A DNA stretch of 63,834 nucleotides, filler included, from Platydemus manokwari (taxonomy: Eukaryota), in the NCBI GenBank assembly GCA_037951405.1. It is 6 parts of 6 records of this genome, joined end to end, with 100 filler letters (N's around TTAATTAATTAA, not from the genome) between each part and the next. Parts side by side here need not be neighbours in the genome. Positions count along the whole stretch, not along the records: positions 1 to 9,036 come from JBBMOY011310316.1; 5 more parts are not named here. One strand, 5' to 3'. The notes under the pieces were generated by a model. That model saw nothing but the letters and a program-made list of their open reading frames with translations. It was not told the origin of the DNA and searched no databases. Below, one piece after another: positions 1-9,036 of the stretch (position 1 is the stretch's first letter; every line of letters starts with the position of its first letter). The position numbers and the translations under genes are program-made.

Positions 1-344
1 GCAAATTGAGAAATATTCTCAATTTTTACAATTATTTTATAAAAATAACCAATGATATTATTAAACATATCTGTAATTAACTAACCCGATTTATAATTAT
101 AAAAATTTAAATTTAAAAACTCAAATAATTATATAAAAGTGTTGTGATTAGAATTGGAACTTGGTTTTAAAACTTGGTTTTTTTTTACTATTAGACATCT
201 TAAAAGATGAGATATTAATTGAATTATATGAATAAATCAAATGTGGCAGTTATATATATAAAATTAAGTTATAAAATGATCTGATGCGCGAAAATCCATT
301 ATAACGAAAGTAGGTCAAAAGACCCTTTTCCTTAACTTAATCCC
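1..344 (+). mobile_element. MITE family A copy 1 (PIF/Harbinger-like), 5' part outside the window
   Basis: Aligns by eye along its length with 30035-30367 and, inverted, with about 42760-43090. It ends ...ttaacttaatCCC followed by TTA. Confidence 0.75.
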
Positions 345-610
345 TTATTTTTATTATTATTTGGAGATTAAAGCAAATTATCACAAAAAATGCGCATTAC
401 CTTTGGTGGACGAATAAGCTTTCAGATTTTTCTTAAATATTTGTGGACTATTAAACAAGATTTGTTGAACGTTTATAACAATTATAGTCCATCAAATCAC
501 TGATATTCTCATATTCATACAAAAAATAATAAATATATTTGAATTAGAAGGAAAAAATGTTTCTCGGTGGGATTAAAGTTGTCAGTAACTTTCTGAATAT
601 TATATCATTT

Positions 611-844
611 GATCAGGTATAATGCGTGACATCAAATGATTTTAGTAAGACTGATAATGAATGAATATTCTAGGTTTTAATTAATTAATTAAATAGACAG
701 TTCGGTTTATCATTAAATTCTATTAATTTTGGACATTAATATCAGTTGATCAGATATAATATTTGACATCAAAAGATTTTACTACGACCGATAATGAATA
801 TTCTGGGTTTTCATTAATTAATTAAATAGAAAGTTCGGTTTATC
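611..844 (+). repeat. Diverged direct duplication of about 100 bp (611-711 and 748-844)
   Basis: Both units read gatcag.tataat...tgacatcaaa.gattt...gataatgaat...attct.ggttt...ttaattaattaaataga.agttcggtttatc. Confidence 0.8.
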
Positions 845-1127
845 GAAAAATTTCGTTTTGTGAAACATCACTGAAAAAATGTGATTAAATTTATTGGCTT
901 GATTGATAAGAGAAAGATAATTTTAAAAATATCTTGTTACAATTTAGTTCGTTTGTTATAAAGATAAATTGACAATTCTTGTTCGAGTCATGACAAAAAT
1001 AATTGTTCGTTAAAATTGAATCTAAAATATCTCTCATTGTTGGTATTTATATCTTAATTATTTTTATAATAAAATCGATTAATATCATTTTTGCTATTTT
1101 AACGGATGTGAGCTCGTCCTTATAAAT

Positions 1128-1437
1128 CAGAGGTTCTCAGCCACGGGGTCGTGTTTTATGATGCTGTTAAATAAATAGTTTGTGATGCTGATTAAACTAC
1201 TTCTGTTTACAATTACCTTGACTACTACAGTTAAGTATTTTATAGGTATAGTATTTATTATCTGATAACCTTATTATTATTATAGGTAATTACTTGTTGT
1301 AAATCAATGTAATGTAAATCAAATGATAACTAAATATCATTTTATTCTATATAGTACATATTATATAGATATTTAGTTATATTTAATAATATTGATTTTC
1401 TTTGGGGTCGCCAGAGAAAAAAGGTTGAGAACCGCTG
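1128..1437. mobile_element. hAT (Charlie-like) MITE, 310 bp
   Basis: TIRs are CAGAGGTTCTCAGCC and GGTTGAGAACCGCTG. A perfect 8-bp target-site duplication TTATAAAT lies at 1120-1127 and 1438-1445. Confidence 0.9.
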
Positions 1438-1634
1438 TTATAAATACATATATTAAAATCGAAATGAAAGTAAATATTGTGAAGGTGTAATTTACAATGG
1501 GACAGTGCATCAAAATATAAAAGTATTATATCCTAACACCTAGAAATATGATGAGATGCGAAAATGAATTGAATCCTCATACTTTTACTTTTATAATTAG
1601 ATAATAATGACAATATAAATCTATATTATTGAAC

Positions 1635-4600
1635 CTGTTCTCCAGCTTCCAATGATGTCACTTCAAATTCAATTCGTTTACTGGATGAAGATTTGACTGA
1701 AACATTGGTGTTATCGGTTTTTATTTTTTCAAGAAGACTGATTTTTGCCGTTGAATAATTTGATGGCGAGAGTGCATCTTCTAAAAATACCGACACCCTG
1801 ATTGAGGAACAATCAATTTACAATTATTAATGAAAATATCTGATTTACTGAATCGAATAGACATCTTTGGATTCATTGTTTGTGATGGCTATCTTGATAG
1901 GATAGCATTCATTGACAAGAATCGGTTTGGAATGTATTAGTTCTAATGAGAACTTTGACTGTCGAGAAGTCAATCTGGAAAAAATTTTAATTAGACTTAC
2001 AAATTTAAGAAAACAATATTGGAAAAGTGAATTTAATATTATTCTTAATGAAAGTGATGAGACTATCGATCGACTAGAGATATTCTAAAAGTAAATTCTC
2101 AAATAGAATATTAAAAATAATAATAAAATATAAGGCTTTTACATGGTCATTTACATATTTTTCGATAACATAAAAACAAAAACACTAAACTCTTGATTAG
2201 TAAAATGTATAGATAAATTATTAAAATAGCTTTTTTAAAAATATTTCAATCACAAAAAAAATTGATGAAAAATGTTAAAATTTTACTCGACAAATGGTGT
2301 TACCAAAATCGATGACCATGGTACAAGAGATCCAACGGGTCTGAATACATCTGGTTTTGAAGGTTTGAAAGTTTTCCTCAAATATTCTTCCATACTAATC
2401 GTCCATTGTAGATAAGCATGACAGTAATTCATATCATCACCCAGTAAGACAAAAACCTTATCAACCTAAATACAATTAAATTGATTGCGAAACAAGCTTC
2501 TTTATAAGAGTATATAATAAAAGTTAAATAAACAAAACAGTTACGACCATGGATATTTGTCCAGTCAATGTCTAAGTTTTTCATGCAATAATTGTGAAGA
2601 TCAGCCCATAAATTAGATCAAGTATCAATTGCGAGAAATAGAAATTATGGCTTTATGATTAGCCTTTAATTTTCCAAATGGACTTTTCCATTTAATTTAA
2701 CTTATGATGTAGAGAATAATGAATTAGATTGGATGTCTTACGAAAACTGAAAACATAATTTCTGCGATTAATACTGTCTGACAATCTGTTAGTTTTAGAA
2801 TGATTTAATGATATAGTTTCATAGATTTTTCCTAAATAGTTAGATACTCTATTTCATTGAAGAGGCAGTCACACTCATATCCAACTATTCTAGCGAAATC
2901 CACTCTCGTTTATTTATAATATAATAAAACGCATATATTCAGTAAAAAAAAACCCAATGAATAATTCGCAATGCGAAAAAAATAATCAATAAATTTATAA
3001 AGAATAAGATAACCCTAAAACAATCTTTTAAGTTTAGCTAATTATGAAACCACACAATTTGATAAAATATAAAAATAATAATCTGATATGAATCACAATT
3101 TTTGACATATTTTACAATGCCAACACATTGATTATGATATTTATCTATAACTGTCAAATATTAGAGAGAACCTTAATAATCATATTAATTATTTTTAAAT
3201 TAATTAATTAAAAAATAAATTTAAAGAAAAATCTTGAAATTAAAAAATGTTCTTCAAATCTCACTAACCCTGATGATGTGAGTTCCTTCATCGGCAATCG
3301 GTACAATGGTAAATTTGAATTCATTCACAACAAATGGTTCCAAATCAAATGGAAACTGATCGTTATCCACCAGTGAGCAACGCTCATTGTATCTCTGAAG
3401 AAGTTGATCATAAAAATAAAGACAAGTATTTAGCGAAAATAAATTACATTGTCCAGGAAGTTGATCTCGACTTTTTGTATTAGAAGAGATTTCTTTGCAG
3501 TACATCTGAAATAGGTGGTAATAATTATCGATCAGTGATTTTCATCCTTCCGAGCTTATAGAATATTATTAAATCATATTTAATCAAAACATTACAGTCA
3601 ATCTGAACGAAATAAATATTCACAAACAAAACAAGTTATGAAACACTATATTTGCAGTATTCTTCTTCCTAATCGCCACTCCTTCTAACCGCCTACATTT
3701 TTAGGAAATTCAAAAATTATAATAGAAAATTCCTAGTTGCCAGTTCTGTAAACCGCCACATTTTTAAAAAAATATTTTGAAGATTTATTTTCATTTTTGA
3801 CATAATAACGTTGTTTTAATATTAATTTTTGATGAAAACATCTTCAATAGATCTTATTTATGGCTAAACGAAAGTGTGTAAAGTTAACTGTTGTTGAAAA
3901 AATTGAAATTTTGAAGTACATTGAATTTTATCTTGTATATTCAGATAACAGAGGTTTTCTAAATTTTAAAAAGAACTTTTAAGAAGAACTATCAATGATA
4001 TCAGAAGAAACAAGGATTTTCTGATTCAAAATGCTGATCTTGTACACAAAAGGCGTTGGCGAATTCCGGTTTTAAAGCTTAATCTTTTAAACAAAGAATT
4101 GCCCGTATGGGTGCTATCATTACGGATAATATAACAAAATAAATGCAGTTCAAAATAGCTGATTTAAATGACATACAAGATTTTAAATCCTCAAATGGAT
4201 GGTTAAGAAGTTTTAAGGAAAGAAATTTGTTGAAGTTAAGAAATCTACACGGTGAATCACATGCCATGTCAACCATATTCCTCCTAACCGCCACTTCTGG
4301 GGAATTGGAAAAATGTGGCGGTTAAGAGGAGTGTGTATATAAGAAAAATAATGAGTGACGGTTAGGAAGAGAAATACTGATACACTTGAAGAATAAAAAC
4401 AAGTTGTTAGATTAAAAAATTACAGAACTGATAAAATCTCACCAAAATTCAAATTAATTAATTTTTGTTCATATAGATTTCTTGTTTTGGACTTGAATTA
4501 AAAAAATCAATCATTTCTTTCCCCATGTACGGTTTTGATAAATATTAGCAAAATAAATTAAGCAGTAAACAAATAAATCAAAAGAATGCGATTTATTCCA

Positions 4601-7021
4601 TGGGGATTGTTTCGACAGGAAATGATGAAACAAGATAACACAATCATCATTATCACAATTTGCTTTGAATAAAATTTGGAGGAAATAACGATATAATTCA
4701 ATTATAAATGGTTATTAATATCAAATTTCTATGATTTAGCGGATCAATATGAAATTGATTTTGAGATTTTAAAAGCTCATTGTGAATTAAAATCATTCTC
4801 AATATTATAAATTAAATAAATATCACTAAAATTAAATTTCAAAACAAATTTACCTAAGAAAAATGGAAAAGTTAAAGCATTTATCCACTGAATACTTCTC
4901 ACTTGGAAAAACTACTTTACAATCCACTGAAACCAATGAATAAAAATGAAAACATCAATCGGAATTATTCATTTCAAACTCACCACAACTGGCCAATTCA
5001 TTCATATTGATACAAAAATCATCCCTTTTCACTGTCAAAGTATCATATTCTGCCATGGTTTTCTTCCAAAGATCCAATCCTTTCGAAATCTGATGTTCAT
5101 CAAAACCATATTCCGGTTCCGGTATTACATTCTTGAAATGGAAATCGTAATTGACACGATAACAAAAATCAAAAAAAACCCTTACAGAAATAATCCTATT
5201 TAAATTATCTTGTATTCTAATCTTTTCTTCGACACTTAAATCAATTTCTAATGACCAAAACGTTAAGAAAAACACAATGTTTTTGTTGTTTTTTTTGCGA
5301 ATTTAAACAATAAAAAATCGATTTATTTTTTTTGTAAATTATTACATGAAATTAAATTCAAAAATATCAGATTTAAATTTTAAATAAAGGCTCTTCAGCA
5401 ATTGCTAATTTAATATTGAATTTAATATCAGTAATTCTTGCCCAATCTCGGATAATTGTGATTCCAACACGATCGGAATGGGGATTGTTGATGATTCGTT
5501 GTGTTTCTTGATGTTGATAAAACTCCAGACGTGTCTGTGGAGTACAGAGTGAACAATTTGCAATGAGAAATGCAAAGAAAAACGGACAAAAACAACAATG
5601 GTGCCAAAATCTTAGAAATCCATAGAAAATATGTTGACAACCATCACACATGAAACTGTAACAACTTGATGATCGTTTGTGACGCCATATATGCCAAGCA
5701 AATGATGGACATTCCATGTGAACATTGAAACAATGTTGTTGCCATTCATTGTGAGTCAAAAAGATATTCCCACATTGACATCGATGGACAGGAGCCAATC
5801 TACAAGCATTAAAATCGTGATGATTTATCAAATCATTCTTGTTTTCAAATGATTCACCACACTTCTTACACACTTCATTGATCATTTCAAATGGTTTCAA
5901 AGATTGATTAACAAGATTTTCGACATGATTTTCTACAATTTTTATTAATTTATTCATCAATTTATGAGGAAATATATCAGTGATTTCGTAGTACTCCAAA
6001 AGTATTTCTCGAAATTCTAATTTTAAATGTTGTAAAAAACTTATTTTTTCCTGAACAATTGCAGCCTTTTTAAAATTATCATTGGAAGTATATTGTTCGG
6101 ATCCATTTGGAAACAAGGGATACCATTGAATGATTTGGTCTATCCAAATTCCGGGTTTGGGATTCGTATTTAATCGATACATAATAAGTGGAGAATTAAT
6201 AGTTAACTTTTCAAAGTACAAACAATAGGTAGAATTGAAATACAAACGTCGAAACATCCGACGACCTTGAATAAGATTTCTCAAAATCTCATCGGTCAAT
6301 CCACAATAAGCGATCTCACTAAAATGCATAACCAGGTCAATATTGGAATATCGTTCTGGAGAAAGATTATTATCAACTTTTGCTTCAAAAGGTCTGGCAA
6401 AATCTTCGGCATTAGCCAACATTCTGAATCGAGCAGTTGTTAAATCTACAGCGCTCTTCCGTTCTAATTCATTAGATTTTTGAACTGACGAATTATTATT
6501 CGTAAACTTATTTGCGAAACATTGTTCTGAAATAAAATTTTTGCTCTCCCTTGATGTAATTTTTTCTTTCTTAATCGTGGAGTGAGAAAGAGGAATTTTT
6601 CTCATGTTACTGTATTTTCATCAAAATCATTATCATAATATTATTATTTTCTCTTTAAAATGAATTAAAAAATAATTTATATATTGATTAGAGTTATCGA
6701 TCGTAAAAATTCTGCATAAAAGGATACTTTTACCAATTAATTCTAGACTAATTGATACATAATCTGGCATTTTGGCAATAAGATATGTGCATCTGAAGAT
6801 AATGTTCAGTAAAATATTATCAAATGTAATTAAAACAAAAATATAAATGTGTAAAAATAAAAAATTAATTAACGAATATTGCTGATATGTAAGGAAAATA
6901 TAAATTTTGTATAGGGCAGATTAAAAAATAGATATTAGAACAAGTATTAAAAAAGGAAGACAATGATATGAATTGAAAATGCTATTAATAAATAATTTTA
7001 TTATAAACAATAATAATAATG

Positions 7022-7059
<38 letters not shown>

Positions 7060-7605
7060 GAACACCCAATAAAAGAAGGTTATAAATAAATATTTTAAAT
7101 AAAAGACAAATTAAGACAGAGTATCAACTATAAAAGAAAATACAAGTGCAATTGCTGACAATTTTTACTGGAGCAATATAGTTCGAAGCCATACAAAAAT
7201 ATAGAATATTGGATTTTAATGTGCTAATTTTAGACAAAATATCGTCACTATATGCTAATATTTGTGATTAGATCAATTGCCAGCGGGCGGTGTAGAAAAC
7301 TGAATGAGGAAATATAAAGAACAATTTAACGACGTGGAATTAGTAGCCGACCATTGTTGAAATATATTTTCTAAAATCGGTATCAAAAGTAATTCAATTC
7401 CGATATTGGATGTCACAAATAAATGTCCCATATTTTTATTTACCCTATATAAAATTATAAATTATTAGATTAAAGGCTGTTCATGGAAATGATTATTTTG
7501 ATTGCAATATATTAATAGATATACTTGAGGGAATTTAACAGAGCAGATGTGAGAAGAGCATACCATCGTTCAGACCGATAATCCATAAACACTTTATAAA
7601 AGCAC
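1635..7605 (-). CDS. TRAPPC11: Trafficking protein particle complex subunit 11 (foie gras/gryzun), internal part of a multi-exon gene
   Basis: Frame-compatible GT-AG exons: 7605-7525, 6792-6728 (or 6734), 5247-5186, 5131-4984, 4926-4854, 3505-3448, 3394-3269, 2465-2287, 1974-1849, 1797-1635; a further exon probably starts at 1532. The spliced peptide reads DYRSERWYALLTSALLNSLKCTYLIAKMPDYVSISLELI...EEKIRIQDNLNRII...PEPE...LW...VDCKVVF...RYNERC...SRQSKFSLELIHSKPILVNECYPIKIAITNNE...LEAGEQ. This is colinear with recalled vertebrate TRAPPC11 ([40 protein letters not shown]...[22 protein letters not shown]...LHPGEQ). The 5' and 3' ends were not resolved. Confidence 0.9.
3655..4379 (+). mobile_element. 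Tigger/pogo internal-deletion derivative
   Basis: About 26-bp TIRs (CAGTATTCTTCTTCCTAATCGCCACT vs rc CAGTATTTCTCTTCCTAACCGTCACT). Degraded CENP-B-type HTHs: MAKRKCVKLTVVEKIEILKYIE at 3860 and FKSSNGWLRSFKERNLLKLRNLHGES in ORF 4143-4325. No DDE domain. Confidence 0.88.
5373..6605 (-). CDS. Intronless 410-aa protein with atypical C2H2-like zinc fingers, nested in a TRAPPC11 intron
   Basis: A 1233-nt uninterrupted ORF in very AT-rich DNA. Motifs: CKKCGESFENKNDLINHH, CQCGNIFLTHNEWQQHCFNVH, CDGCQHIFYGFLRFWHHCCFC. AATAAA lies about 45 nt after the stop. The ORF sits between the TRAPPC11 exon ending 6728/6734 and the exon starting 5247. Confidence 0.8.
   Translation of the reverse strand: MRKIPLSHSTIKKEKITSRESKNFISEQCFANKFTNNNSSVQKSNELERKSAVDLTTARFRMLANAEDFARPFEAKVDNNLSPERYSNIDLVMHFSEIAYCGLTDEILRNLIQGRRMFRRLYFNSTYCLYFEKLTINSPLIMYRLNTNPKPGIWIDQIIQWYPLFPNGSEQYTSNDNFKKAAIVQEKISFLQHLKLEFREILLEYYEITDIFPHKLMNKLIKIVENHVENLVNQSLKPFEMINEVCKKCGESFENKNDLINHHDFNACRLAPVHRCQCGNIFLTHNEWQQHCFNVHMECPSFAWHIWRHKRSSSCYSFMCDGCQHIFYGFLRFWHHCCFCPFFFAFLIANCSLCTPQTRLEFYQHQETQRIINNPHSDRVGITIIRDWARITDIKFNIKLAIAEEPLFKI
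7009..7058. repeat. (AAT)n microsatellite
   Basis: Direct reading. Confidence 0.9.
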
Positions 7606-9036
7606 CTGAATAAAATTATTATTTATAAATATATAAATTCAATATTTCTAAAATGACAAAATTGTGACAAAATGTTATCACTTCATCGATCATAGAGGGT
7701 ATCAATTAAATATTATTATTTTATAGGAATACGTTGATTAAGAATCAAGAATAATATCACAACAGGTACCTACAACCCTGTTTTAAGTTAAAGTAAAGTA
7801 AAATCAAATGGTCGTTAGTTCTAACACCATTGATGGACCAAAGTTACTATCTGATACTGATGAGTAAAAAAACGATACAAATCGTTCTACCAGTGAACTA
7901 CTCAGAATATTCTCATAATCTTTTCAATTATTATTATTATTATTATTATTATTATAACTGATAGAATCATAGGTATTTCATTGAAGTAAACAATCAATTA
8001 ATTCAGATATTTACGATACAAATTTATCATAACAATTTCATGCATTTAATTTGAAACATTGACGGTTCTTGGACTGTTTTCACACTCTTGAAATGGTTTA
8101 TTTATTATCACGTGAATATTAATCATAATATCTACATAAATTTATATACAGCAATAATTAATAATATCCAAAATTACTGGTAATAATATATCCATATAAA
8201 TTGAAATATATTGATGATAATATTCTCGGTGAATTTTTAAAATTAGATTGAAAGAACTGATAATGGGTCAACTCAAATTAAGAAGCATAGCGCTTTATCT
8301 AATTGGGAGAGAAATGACAATATTTTTATCTAACGGCAGTAAAAGAAACATAATTTTCTGATCAGAATGAAATGTCATCAAAATATCATGAATATTTTTT
8401 TGACAAAATGTTTATAAATTTGTATCTTTCTCAAATAAATTAGGAGTTTTTGGTAAATTTTTAAGCGGTTACTTATCAAATTTAAAAACATTCATAAAAT
8501 TCGTTATCATTATTTTATTATTGTATATTGGAAGACTTAAACTCGAAGTTTGCGGTGCGTTTCGAGTGGACTTTACCGTGATTAAAAATGTTTAAATGAT
8601 CAAAAACTAATTACTGAAGAAAATTAGAAAAAAATAGCGAGAAAACTGTATTACCATTGTTATTCAGTATTCTACTAAAAAATATTTCGATTTTATGAAT
8701 TGATGAAGCACTTTGAATAGTTAAGAGTACAATATTGATAACCGATCATCAAACAAACCGTATAAATAATGAATCCAGTCGGATCTATTTACAACTAAAT
8801 ATGAATCAAATATGTAAATTGATAATTTTATCAGTCTTGTAAATATCACATGTATGATAGCTCACTCCGGTTTATACTGGAAATAAGAAGAAACGTGTTA
8901 TCGACAAACTTATGCGACAATAAATAATTTAAAGATTTTATTTTTATAAAAAATTCTTACTAGTTGCGAGGATTGGATTTATCATGGAAGTGATTAGGTA
9001 GCACATTTTCTGCGCAGCTTATTGGAAGTATAAGTT

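Follow-up and report, generated by a model that had tools for sequence, protein, structure and literature searches.

A conserved Cys/His-rich gene nested in sense orientation within one short intron of a host gene, most likely TRAPPC11, in Platydemus manokwari

Introduction

How might an intact protein-coding gene be expressed when it fills most of an intron of another gene and is read from the same strand as its host? This question is raised by a locus in a stretch of Platydemus manokwari DNA (assembly GCA_037951405.1) that is 63,834 nucleotides long, filler included, and is called the window here. In its first part (positions 1 to 9,036, record JBBMOY011310316.1) an open reading frame (ORF) for a Cys/His-rich protein lies on the minus strand between exons of a larger gene, most likely TRAPPC11. 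A first-pass annotation had described an intact zinc-finger gene under selection at this place, possibly a retrogene or domesticated element, with expression mutually exclusive with, or processed from, the pre-mRNA of its host. The analysis presented here points to a conserved gene that is probably transcribed as a unit of its own. Features are given in window positions, with the strand in brackets.

An intact reading frame within a short intron

The ORF occupies 5373..6605 (-) and runs without introns from an ATG to a TAA, encoding 410 amino acids in 1233 nt including the stop codon. Stop trinucleotides occur at a frequency of 7.5% beyond the ORF, and the chance expectation for an open frame of 410 codons in the window is about 2e-10, so the ORF is not a chance open frame. 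The host intron that contains it spans 6733..5248 (-) and measures 1486 nt, of which the ORF takes up 83%, in agreement with the earlier estimate of a 1.48-kb intron filled to more than 80% by a stop-free frame of 1233 nt. The distance from the host donor to the ATG is 128 nt and that from the stop codon to the host acceptor 125 nt (about 125 nt each in the first-pass annotation), and the AATAAA that had been noticed after the stop codon is located at 5327-5322.

On the upstream side of the intron, a predicted host exon of 59 nt at 6734..6792 (-), called exon B here, has tcttcag/ as a good acceptor and G/gtaaaagt as a strong donor (GT at 6733-6732) and is open in one frame only. Its first codon takes two nucleotides from the preceding exon, and it ends one nucleotide into the next codon. 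The downstream acceptor is cattag/, with the AG at 5249-5248, and belongs to a 3' splice region (5248..5275 (-)) with a T-rich tract and a branch-like TTAAC motif (5266-5262), which is kept as TTTTTCTTGAC...TTAG in L001, a contig from a second species that is described below. The flanking exons splice in frame, as had been proposed: the G at the phase-1 end of exon B (...ATT G) is completed to a GAA codon by the first two nucleotides, AA, of the downstream exon, and the frame meets no stop before or after the join. A second possible donor, 6 nt further downstream than the one at 6733, would also preserve the frame. When exon B is read through its donor into the intron, a stop is reached at 6635-6633, and therefore the interval is not one long exon.

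The ORF and its candidate signals (5298-6733) lie between the donor at 6733 and the acceptor at 5248, the latter conserved in the second species. As far as sequence and conservation can tell, the nested gene lies in sense orientation within one intron of a larger multi-exon gene. The same-strand arrangement of the first-pass annotation thereby holds, with downstream exons that are conserved internal exons without a start codon.

Orthologue, synteny and selection

A word-indexed protein search rendered a sole orthologue, P0001 (415 aa, 73% identity), which is encoded on the Logan contig L001 of 2,046 nt. This contig begins about 30 nt downstream of the host donor, and its positions 266-1874 are collinear with 6452-4833 of the window at 74% identity, a segment that runs through the ORF and the spacer into host exons C, D and E farther downstream. 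The cluster of P0001 has one member on one contig. The window protein itself has no record in the contig collection, and no further orthologues were found in scans of metagenome and viral contigs.

Nucleotide identity to L001 is 76% for codons 52-410 of the ORF and 78-82% for host exons C, D and E, in both cases without indels; the spacers and two short host introns show 50-58% identity and do contain indels. Across the 1077 aligned nucleotides of the ORF core there are zero indels. For codons 55-410, the nonsynonymous (dN) and synonymous (dS) divergences are 0.13 and 2.9 according to NG86, giving a dN/dS of about 0.044, and 0.12 and 1.67 according to maximum likelihood, giving about 0.07. The selection that had been suspected is thus borne out by a dN/dS of about 0.04-0.07 against a syntenic orthologue. 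The host exons C-E have a dN of 0.095 with saturated dS, and judged by these estimates the constraint on the nested gene is equal to that on its host.

Amino acid identity to P0001 amounts to 79% over residues 52-410 and to 29% over residues 1-51. The N-terminal 51 codons (6453..6605 (-)) evolve fast, with 42% nucleotide identity and indels that are all in frame, and are open in both species; the chance of 51 codons staying open is 0.019. The start context TAACATGA is conserved between the window and L001, and the stop codons, TAA here and TGA in L001, fall at an identical aligned position. The GC content at third codon positions is 0.26 in the ORF and 0.28 in the host exons; in the orthologue it is 0.46, tracking its own richer genome. 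This match to the host exons, together with an orthologue that follows the composition of its own genome, indicates a long residence. Since the same position is occupied in a second species with saturated dS, the gene was already at this site before that divergence.

It might still be argued that the ORF is non-functional or a chance open frame, because it belongs to no curated family and its predicted fold has low confidence. However, the expectation of about 2e-10, a dN/dS of about 0.04-0.07 with saturated dS, a core free of indels and 26 retained Cys/His residues out of 28 leave this explanation with a negligible probability, and the comparative data effectively refute it. On this comparison the ORF at 5373-6605 is a genuine, evolutionarily conserved intronless protein-coding gene.

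The encoded protein

Behind the fast-evolving N-terminus follows a conserved N-terminal/central domain, predicted to be all-helical, at residues 52-244 (5874..6452 (-)), with 78% amino acid identity to P0001. It has no relative in Pfam, in PDB sequences or in a library of 1.84 billion representative proteins. AlphaFold2 predictions on two-sequence alignments have low confidence (pLDDT 34 at full length, 41 for residues 52-244), and the models are unusable.

The C-terminal part is a Cys/His-rich region at residues 245-376 (5478..5873 (-)), identified by Pfam, profile and PDB-sequence matches, in which 26 of the 28 Cys/His residues are conserved with P0001. The first finger, residues 245-263 (5817-5873), matches Pfam zf-C2H2 (PF00096) with 16.5 bits, and P0001 matches with 15.8 bits, so that neither protein reaches the gathering threshold of 25.2. 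Its putative ligands C246-x2-C249-x12-H262 are present and conserved, and H263 (x0) or C268 (x5) is the candidate for the fourth. After this finger the sequence continues with irregular CxxC/CxC...H modules, the second module carrying CxC.

A profile built from the two orthologues was compared with the 1.84 billion representative proteins in an exhaustive HMMER search without length filter, by which the domains were covered separately too. It returned P0001 and a C2H2 array only; the latter is the multi-finger protein P0002 (E=1.2e-4), which matches finger 1 repeatedly. Among PDB sequences the matches are limited to PRDM9 fingers (E=2.6e-5), again on finger 1, and a protein-atlas feature search with the whole ORF gave generic small zinc-finger clusters only, at low recognition. 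The zinc-finger nature proposed earlier is in line with this one sub-threshold C2H2 match and the 26 conserved Cys/His residues. The similarity found with HMMER is generic and confined to one finger, and no family emerges beyond the orthologue among the representative proteins. The protein looks lineage-restricted, and "zinc-finger gene" seems a reasonable label. Because of its C-terminal cluster of C2H2-like modules the protein probably binds nucleic acid, presumably DNA and with zinc as the ligated metal.

The host gene

Downstream of the nested gene, the host continues with exon C (5186..5247 (-), 62 nt), exon D (4984..5131 (-), 148 nt) and exon E (4854..4926 (-), 73 nt), with 81%, 78% and 82% nucleotide identity to L001, respectively. 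The splice sites of exons C and D are conserved, and at exon E the conservation ends at the donor. The introns between the three exons are 54 and 57 nt long, and the intron sequence flanking exon C has about 50% identity to L001. Exon C is internal and has no Met, and so it must have a splice partner on the upstream side of the nested gene.

The identity of the host was sought by comparing 28 stop-free segments of the minus strand with Pfam, and six exon segments and one two-species exon profile with PDB sequences. Only exon E1 (7525..7605 (-)) pointed to TRAPPC11, and it is the only exon with any family signal. It resembles the end of the Foie-gras domain of TRAPPC11, with a match to positions 212-236 of Pfam PF11817 (Foie-gras_1) that scores 12.9 bits (E=0.091) where the cut-off is 23.3, and its sole PDB match is a weak one (E=0.86) to residues 475-497 of Drosophila TRAPPC11 (7b6h_A). 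These two matches, weak but specific, agree in that both indicate the family that had been named beforehand in the first-pass annotation, at positions that correspond. A protein-atlas search with a host exon gave no usable result. The exons flanking the ORF gave no TRAPPC11 match singly in Pfam or PDB sequences, where short queries of 20-60 aa have little power. The downstream exons singly gave no match either to Gryzun (PF07919/PF12742), a domain of the C-terminal half of TRAPPC11, with the same low power for exons of 20-60 aa and with the PDB sequence of TRAPPC11 ending at residue 718. The earlier claim of contiguous TRAPPC11 sequence in the flanking exons is thus not confirmed: the flanking exons themselves gave no TRAPPC11 match, and the weak matches are those of the more upstream exon E1.

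A phase-aware enumeration left exactly one stop-free path from E1 to B, which is the direct join of 7525 to 6792. The chain E1-B-C-D-E joins in phase without stops and is therefore consistent with one transcript that spans the nested gene. TRAPPC11 is a probable identity for E1, and on these matches the host gene is most likely TRAPPC11. An exon-like open frame of 62 aa at 7276-7461 (-) was rejected as an exon, as none of its donors is compatible in phase; it falls within the intron of 732 nt that the 7525 to 6792 join implies. The gene model of a home-made exon-chaining script was also rejected, being biased by training on the ORF and containing micro-exons.

The host introns carry two microsatellites, (AAT)16.7 at 7009-7058 and (ATT)9.7 at 7927-7955. 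Elsewhere in the window there is a direct repeat of 60 nt at 660-719 and 793-852, 90% identical and with 133 nt from start to start. No match to Rfam was found within 3300-9036.

Expression of the nested gene

The most plausible reading, to which we assign a probability of roughly 0.6, is that the nested gene is a transcription unit of its own. Transcription would initiate in or just upstream of the 5' spacer of 128 nt (6606..6733 (-)), where a conserved ATCGATA (6701-6695) and a TATA-like TATATAAA (6683-6676) would make up a putative promoter. The 3' end would be formed at a candidate poly(A) signal (5298..5327 (-)), consisting of AATAAA (5327-5322) and a U/GU-rich stretch, about 50 nt past the stop codon. 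Host transcripts would have to read through this AATAAA and be spliced from 6733 to 5248.

The AATAAA begins 46 nt past the stop codon and about 75 nt ahead of the host acceptor, and the block of AATAAA and U/GU-rich sequence is conserved (the AATAAA of L001 is at 1403); the remaining 3' spacer is about 53% identical. The ATCGATA is found 96 nt upstream of the ATG in the window and 91 nt upstream in L001, and both copies in L001 (7-13 and 43-49) lie within 97 nt upstream of the ATG. The motif is similar to the DRE core (TATCGATA) of insect promoters.

Several points weigh against this reading. With 9 copies in the whole window where 2.9 are expected, ATCGAT is about threefold over-represented, which makes the motif argument weak, and the TATA-like TATATAAA is not conserved in L001. 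The space for a promoter is only 128 nt and contains upstream ATGs. The assignment to zinc fingers is below the Pfam threshold, and so are the matches to TRAPPC11, which moreover are located 0.8 kb upstream of the intron. The support for exon B comes from the window sequence, as L001 starts past the donor.

Three further observations concern the spacers and the end of the ORF. The 5' spacer holds an upstream ORF (6636-6607) which in both species ends in a TAA 1 nt before the main ATG, after 10 codons in the window and 3 codons in L001 (about 85-93). The arrangement may play a conserved part in translation or be a by-product of the conserved TAACATG. Adjoining the AATAAA there is one copy of ATCGAT, at 5322-5317. 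An inverted repeat of 20 nt (5347-5366 and 5411-5430, 85% complementary) brackets the stop codon of the nested gene; it is AT-rich and may be due to chance.

Alternative explanations

The zinc-finger mRNA might instead be cut from the host pre-mRNA without any promoter of its own, with spliced-leader trans-splicing at its 5' end and intronic polyadenylation at its 3' end. Each primary transcript would then become either host mRNA or zinc-finger mRNA, in an operon-like manner within the intron, provided that spliced leaders are assumed. Given the sense orientation and spacers as tight as 128 and 125 nt, a promoter would have little space, and the poly(A) signal on the sense strand is conserved. 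In the window an AG (6611-6610) is located 4 nt before the ATG, where trans-splicing would drop the upstream ATGs, but L001 has no AG from -69 to the ATG, so that the proximal acceptor is not conserved. The acceptors of TTTCAG type and the host introns of about 55 nt fit lineages with spliced leaders without proving them. Altogether such processing is possible but unlikely. It is more doubtful that one conserved transcription unit yields host mRNA and zinc-finger mRNA as alternatives that exclude each other, every host pre-mRNA being either spliced across the intron or processed within it by trans- or cis-splicing at the 5' end together with the conserved poly(A) site; if that were true, the levels of a membrane-traffic factor and a DNA-binding protein would be coupled through a decision between splicing and cleavage. 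The intron might also harbour an alternative terminal exon, in which exon B is joined to an acceptor-like ttttatttcAG/ (AG at 6528-6527), fusing the N-terminal half of the host protein to residues 27-410 of the zinc-finger protein in a transcript that ends with the stop codon and poly(A) signal of the nested gene. This acceptor-like site (6526-6545, at codon 27) shares the phase of the donor at 6733, and no other sequence in the 5' part of the ORF looks more like an acceptor. In L001 an AG of the right phase occurs one codon off, though its pyrimidine tract is poor (0.41), and one third of all AGs would be in phase by chance. The join from exon B to 6526 was picked by the naive exon-chaining script, but that script was trained on the ORF itself and its choice is biased. 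Codons 1-26 have stayed open in both species and their ATG context is conserved, which a spliced exon would not require, and the fusion appears quite improbable.

A separate question, compatible with any of these modes of expression, is whether the nested gene began as a domesticated gene of a transposon or virus, or as a retrocopy, that was retained after landing in the intron. An intronless gene inside an intron-rich host would suit such an origin, as would the A-rich tract after the AATAAA, although that tract has no conserved counterpart in L001. The following large intron of the host contains, on the opposite strand, decayed fragments of a pogo/Tc5-like transposase at 3851-3979 (+) and 4143-4322 (+), with stops between the fragments; HTH_Tnp_Tc5 is matched at E=1.6e-4 with 22.0 bits against a cut-off of 22.2, and CENP-B_N weakly at E=0.04. 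The introns of this gene thus accept insertions. The look-alikes in the protein atlas are small C2H2 proteins of giant viruses, which can be regarded as a lead only. On the other hand, metagenome and viral contigs gave no match, no homologue was found in the protein library past the orthologue, whose cluster is one member on one contig, and Pfam detects no transposase, integrase, capsid or other viral domain in the nested protein. Around the ORF there are no terminal inverted repeats (TIRs), long terminal repeats (LTRs), target-site duplications or flanking direct repeats, only short AT-rich matches of the kind expected by chance. No parent gene or paralogue was present among the 1.84 billion representative proteins. 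A recent transposon is not supported, given the lack of TIRs, LTRs, such domains and extra copies in the collections searched and a position shared with a species at saturated dS, and neither is a retrogene, given the lack of a parent or paralogue in the protein library, of flanking direct repeats and of a conserved A-rich tract. The idea of a retrogene or domesticated element put forward in the first-pass annotation accordingly finds little in its favour, and an origin of this kind is improbable.

Significance and comparison with known systems

With an independently transcribed nested gene as the preferred interpretation, the locus adds a selected and taxonomically restricted gene, which standard annotation could miss because it belongs to no family and lies inside another gene. 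The compact layout might serve for studies of the way in which a host transcript passes over an internal poly(A) signal or makes use of it. Same-strand nesting by itself is common, and the locus demonstrates no unusual mechanism.

Compared with the C2H2 zinc fingers of PF00096, the first module is similar in that C246-x2-C249-x12-H262 aligns to the fingers of PRDM9 and of the multi-finger protein, and it is followed by additional conserved Cys/His modules. It differs in the irregular spacing of the second His (HH or H-x5-C). The remaining modules depart from the canonical pattern (CxC, CC-x-C) and are not connected by TGEKP linkers, and the N-terminal 245 residues match no known family.

A poly(A) signal on the sense strand upstream of a 3' splice site gives rise to a choice between cleavage and splicing, as in intronic polyadenylation and in the processing of spliced-leader operons. 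The locus resembles these systems insofar as its poly(A) signal precedes a 3' splice site; cleavage at this signal and a spliced leader would be hypothetical here.

Pairs of host and nested genes are common, and in mouse and human their orientation is only slightly biased towards opposite strands (PMC11694760), so the premise of the first-pass annotation that nested genes are mostly antisense was overstated, at least for these two species. One intronic case that has been described is OMP, within an intron of CAPN5 (PMC6549253). The classical example of nesting on the opposite strand is Drosophila Pcp in Gart (Henikoff et al. 1986, as cited in PMC11694760). Pcp resembles the present locus in that an unrelated protein is encoded within an intron of a housekeeping-type host. 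It differs in being on the opposite strand, where its poly(A) and splice signals are not part of what the host transcript reads, whereas the signals of the present gene are on the sense strand. The likeness to same-strand nested genes of animals is closer, with a complete gene in the same orientation as its host, inside one intron and with its own start, stop and candidate poly(A) signal. In contrast to the long introns that mammalian nested genes prefer (PMC11694760), however, the intron here is very short (1.5 kb) and 83% of it is taken up by the gene, whose candidate poly(A) signal comes as close as about 75 nt to the host acceptor. The locus thus appears to be an ordinary kind of nested gene, and its compactness is what makes it somewhat unusual.

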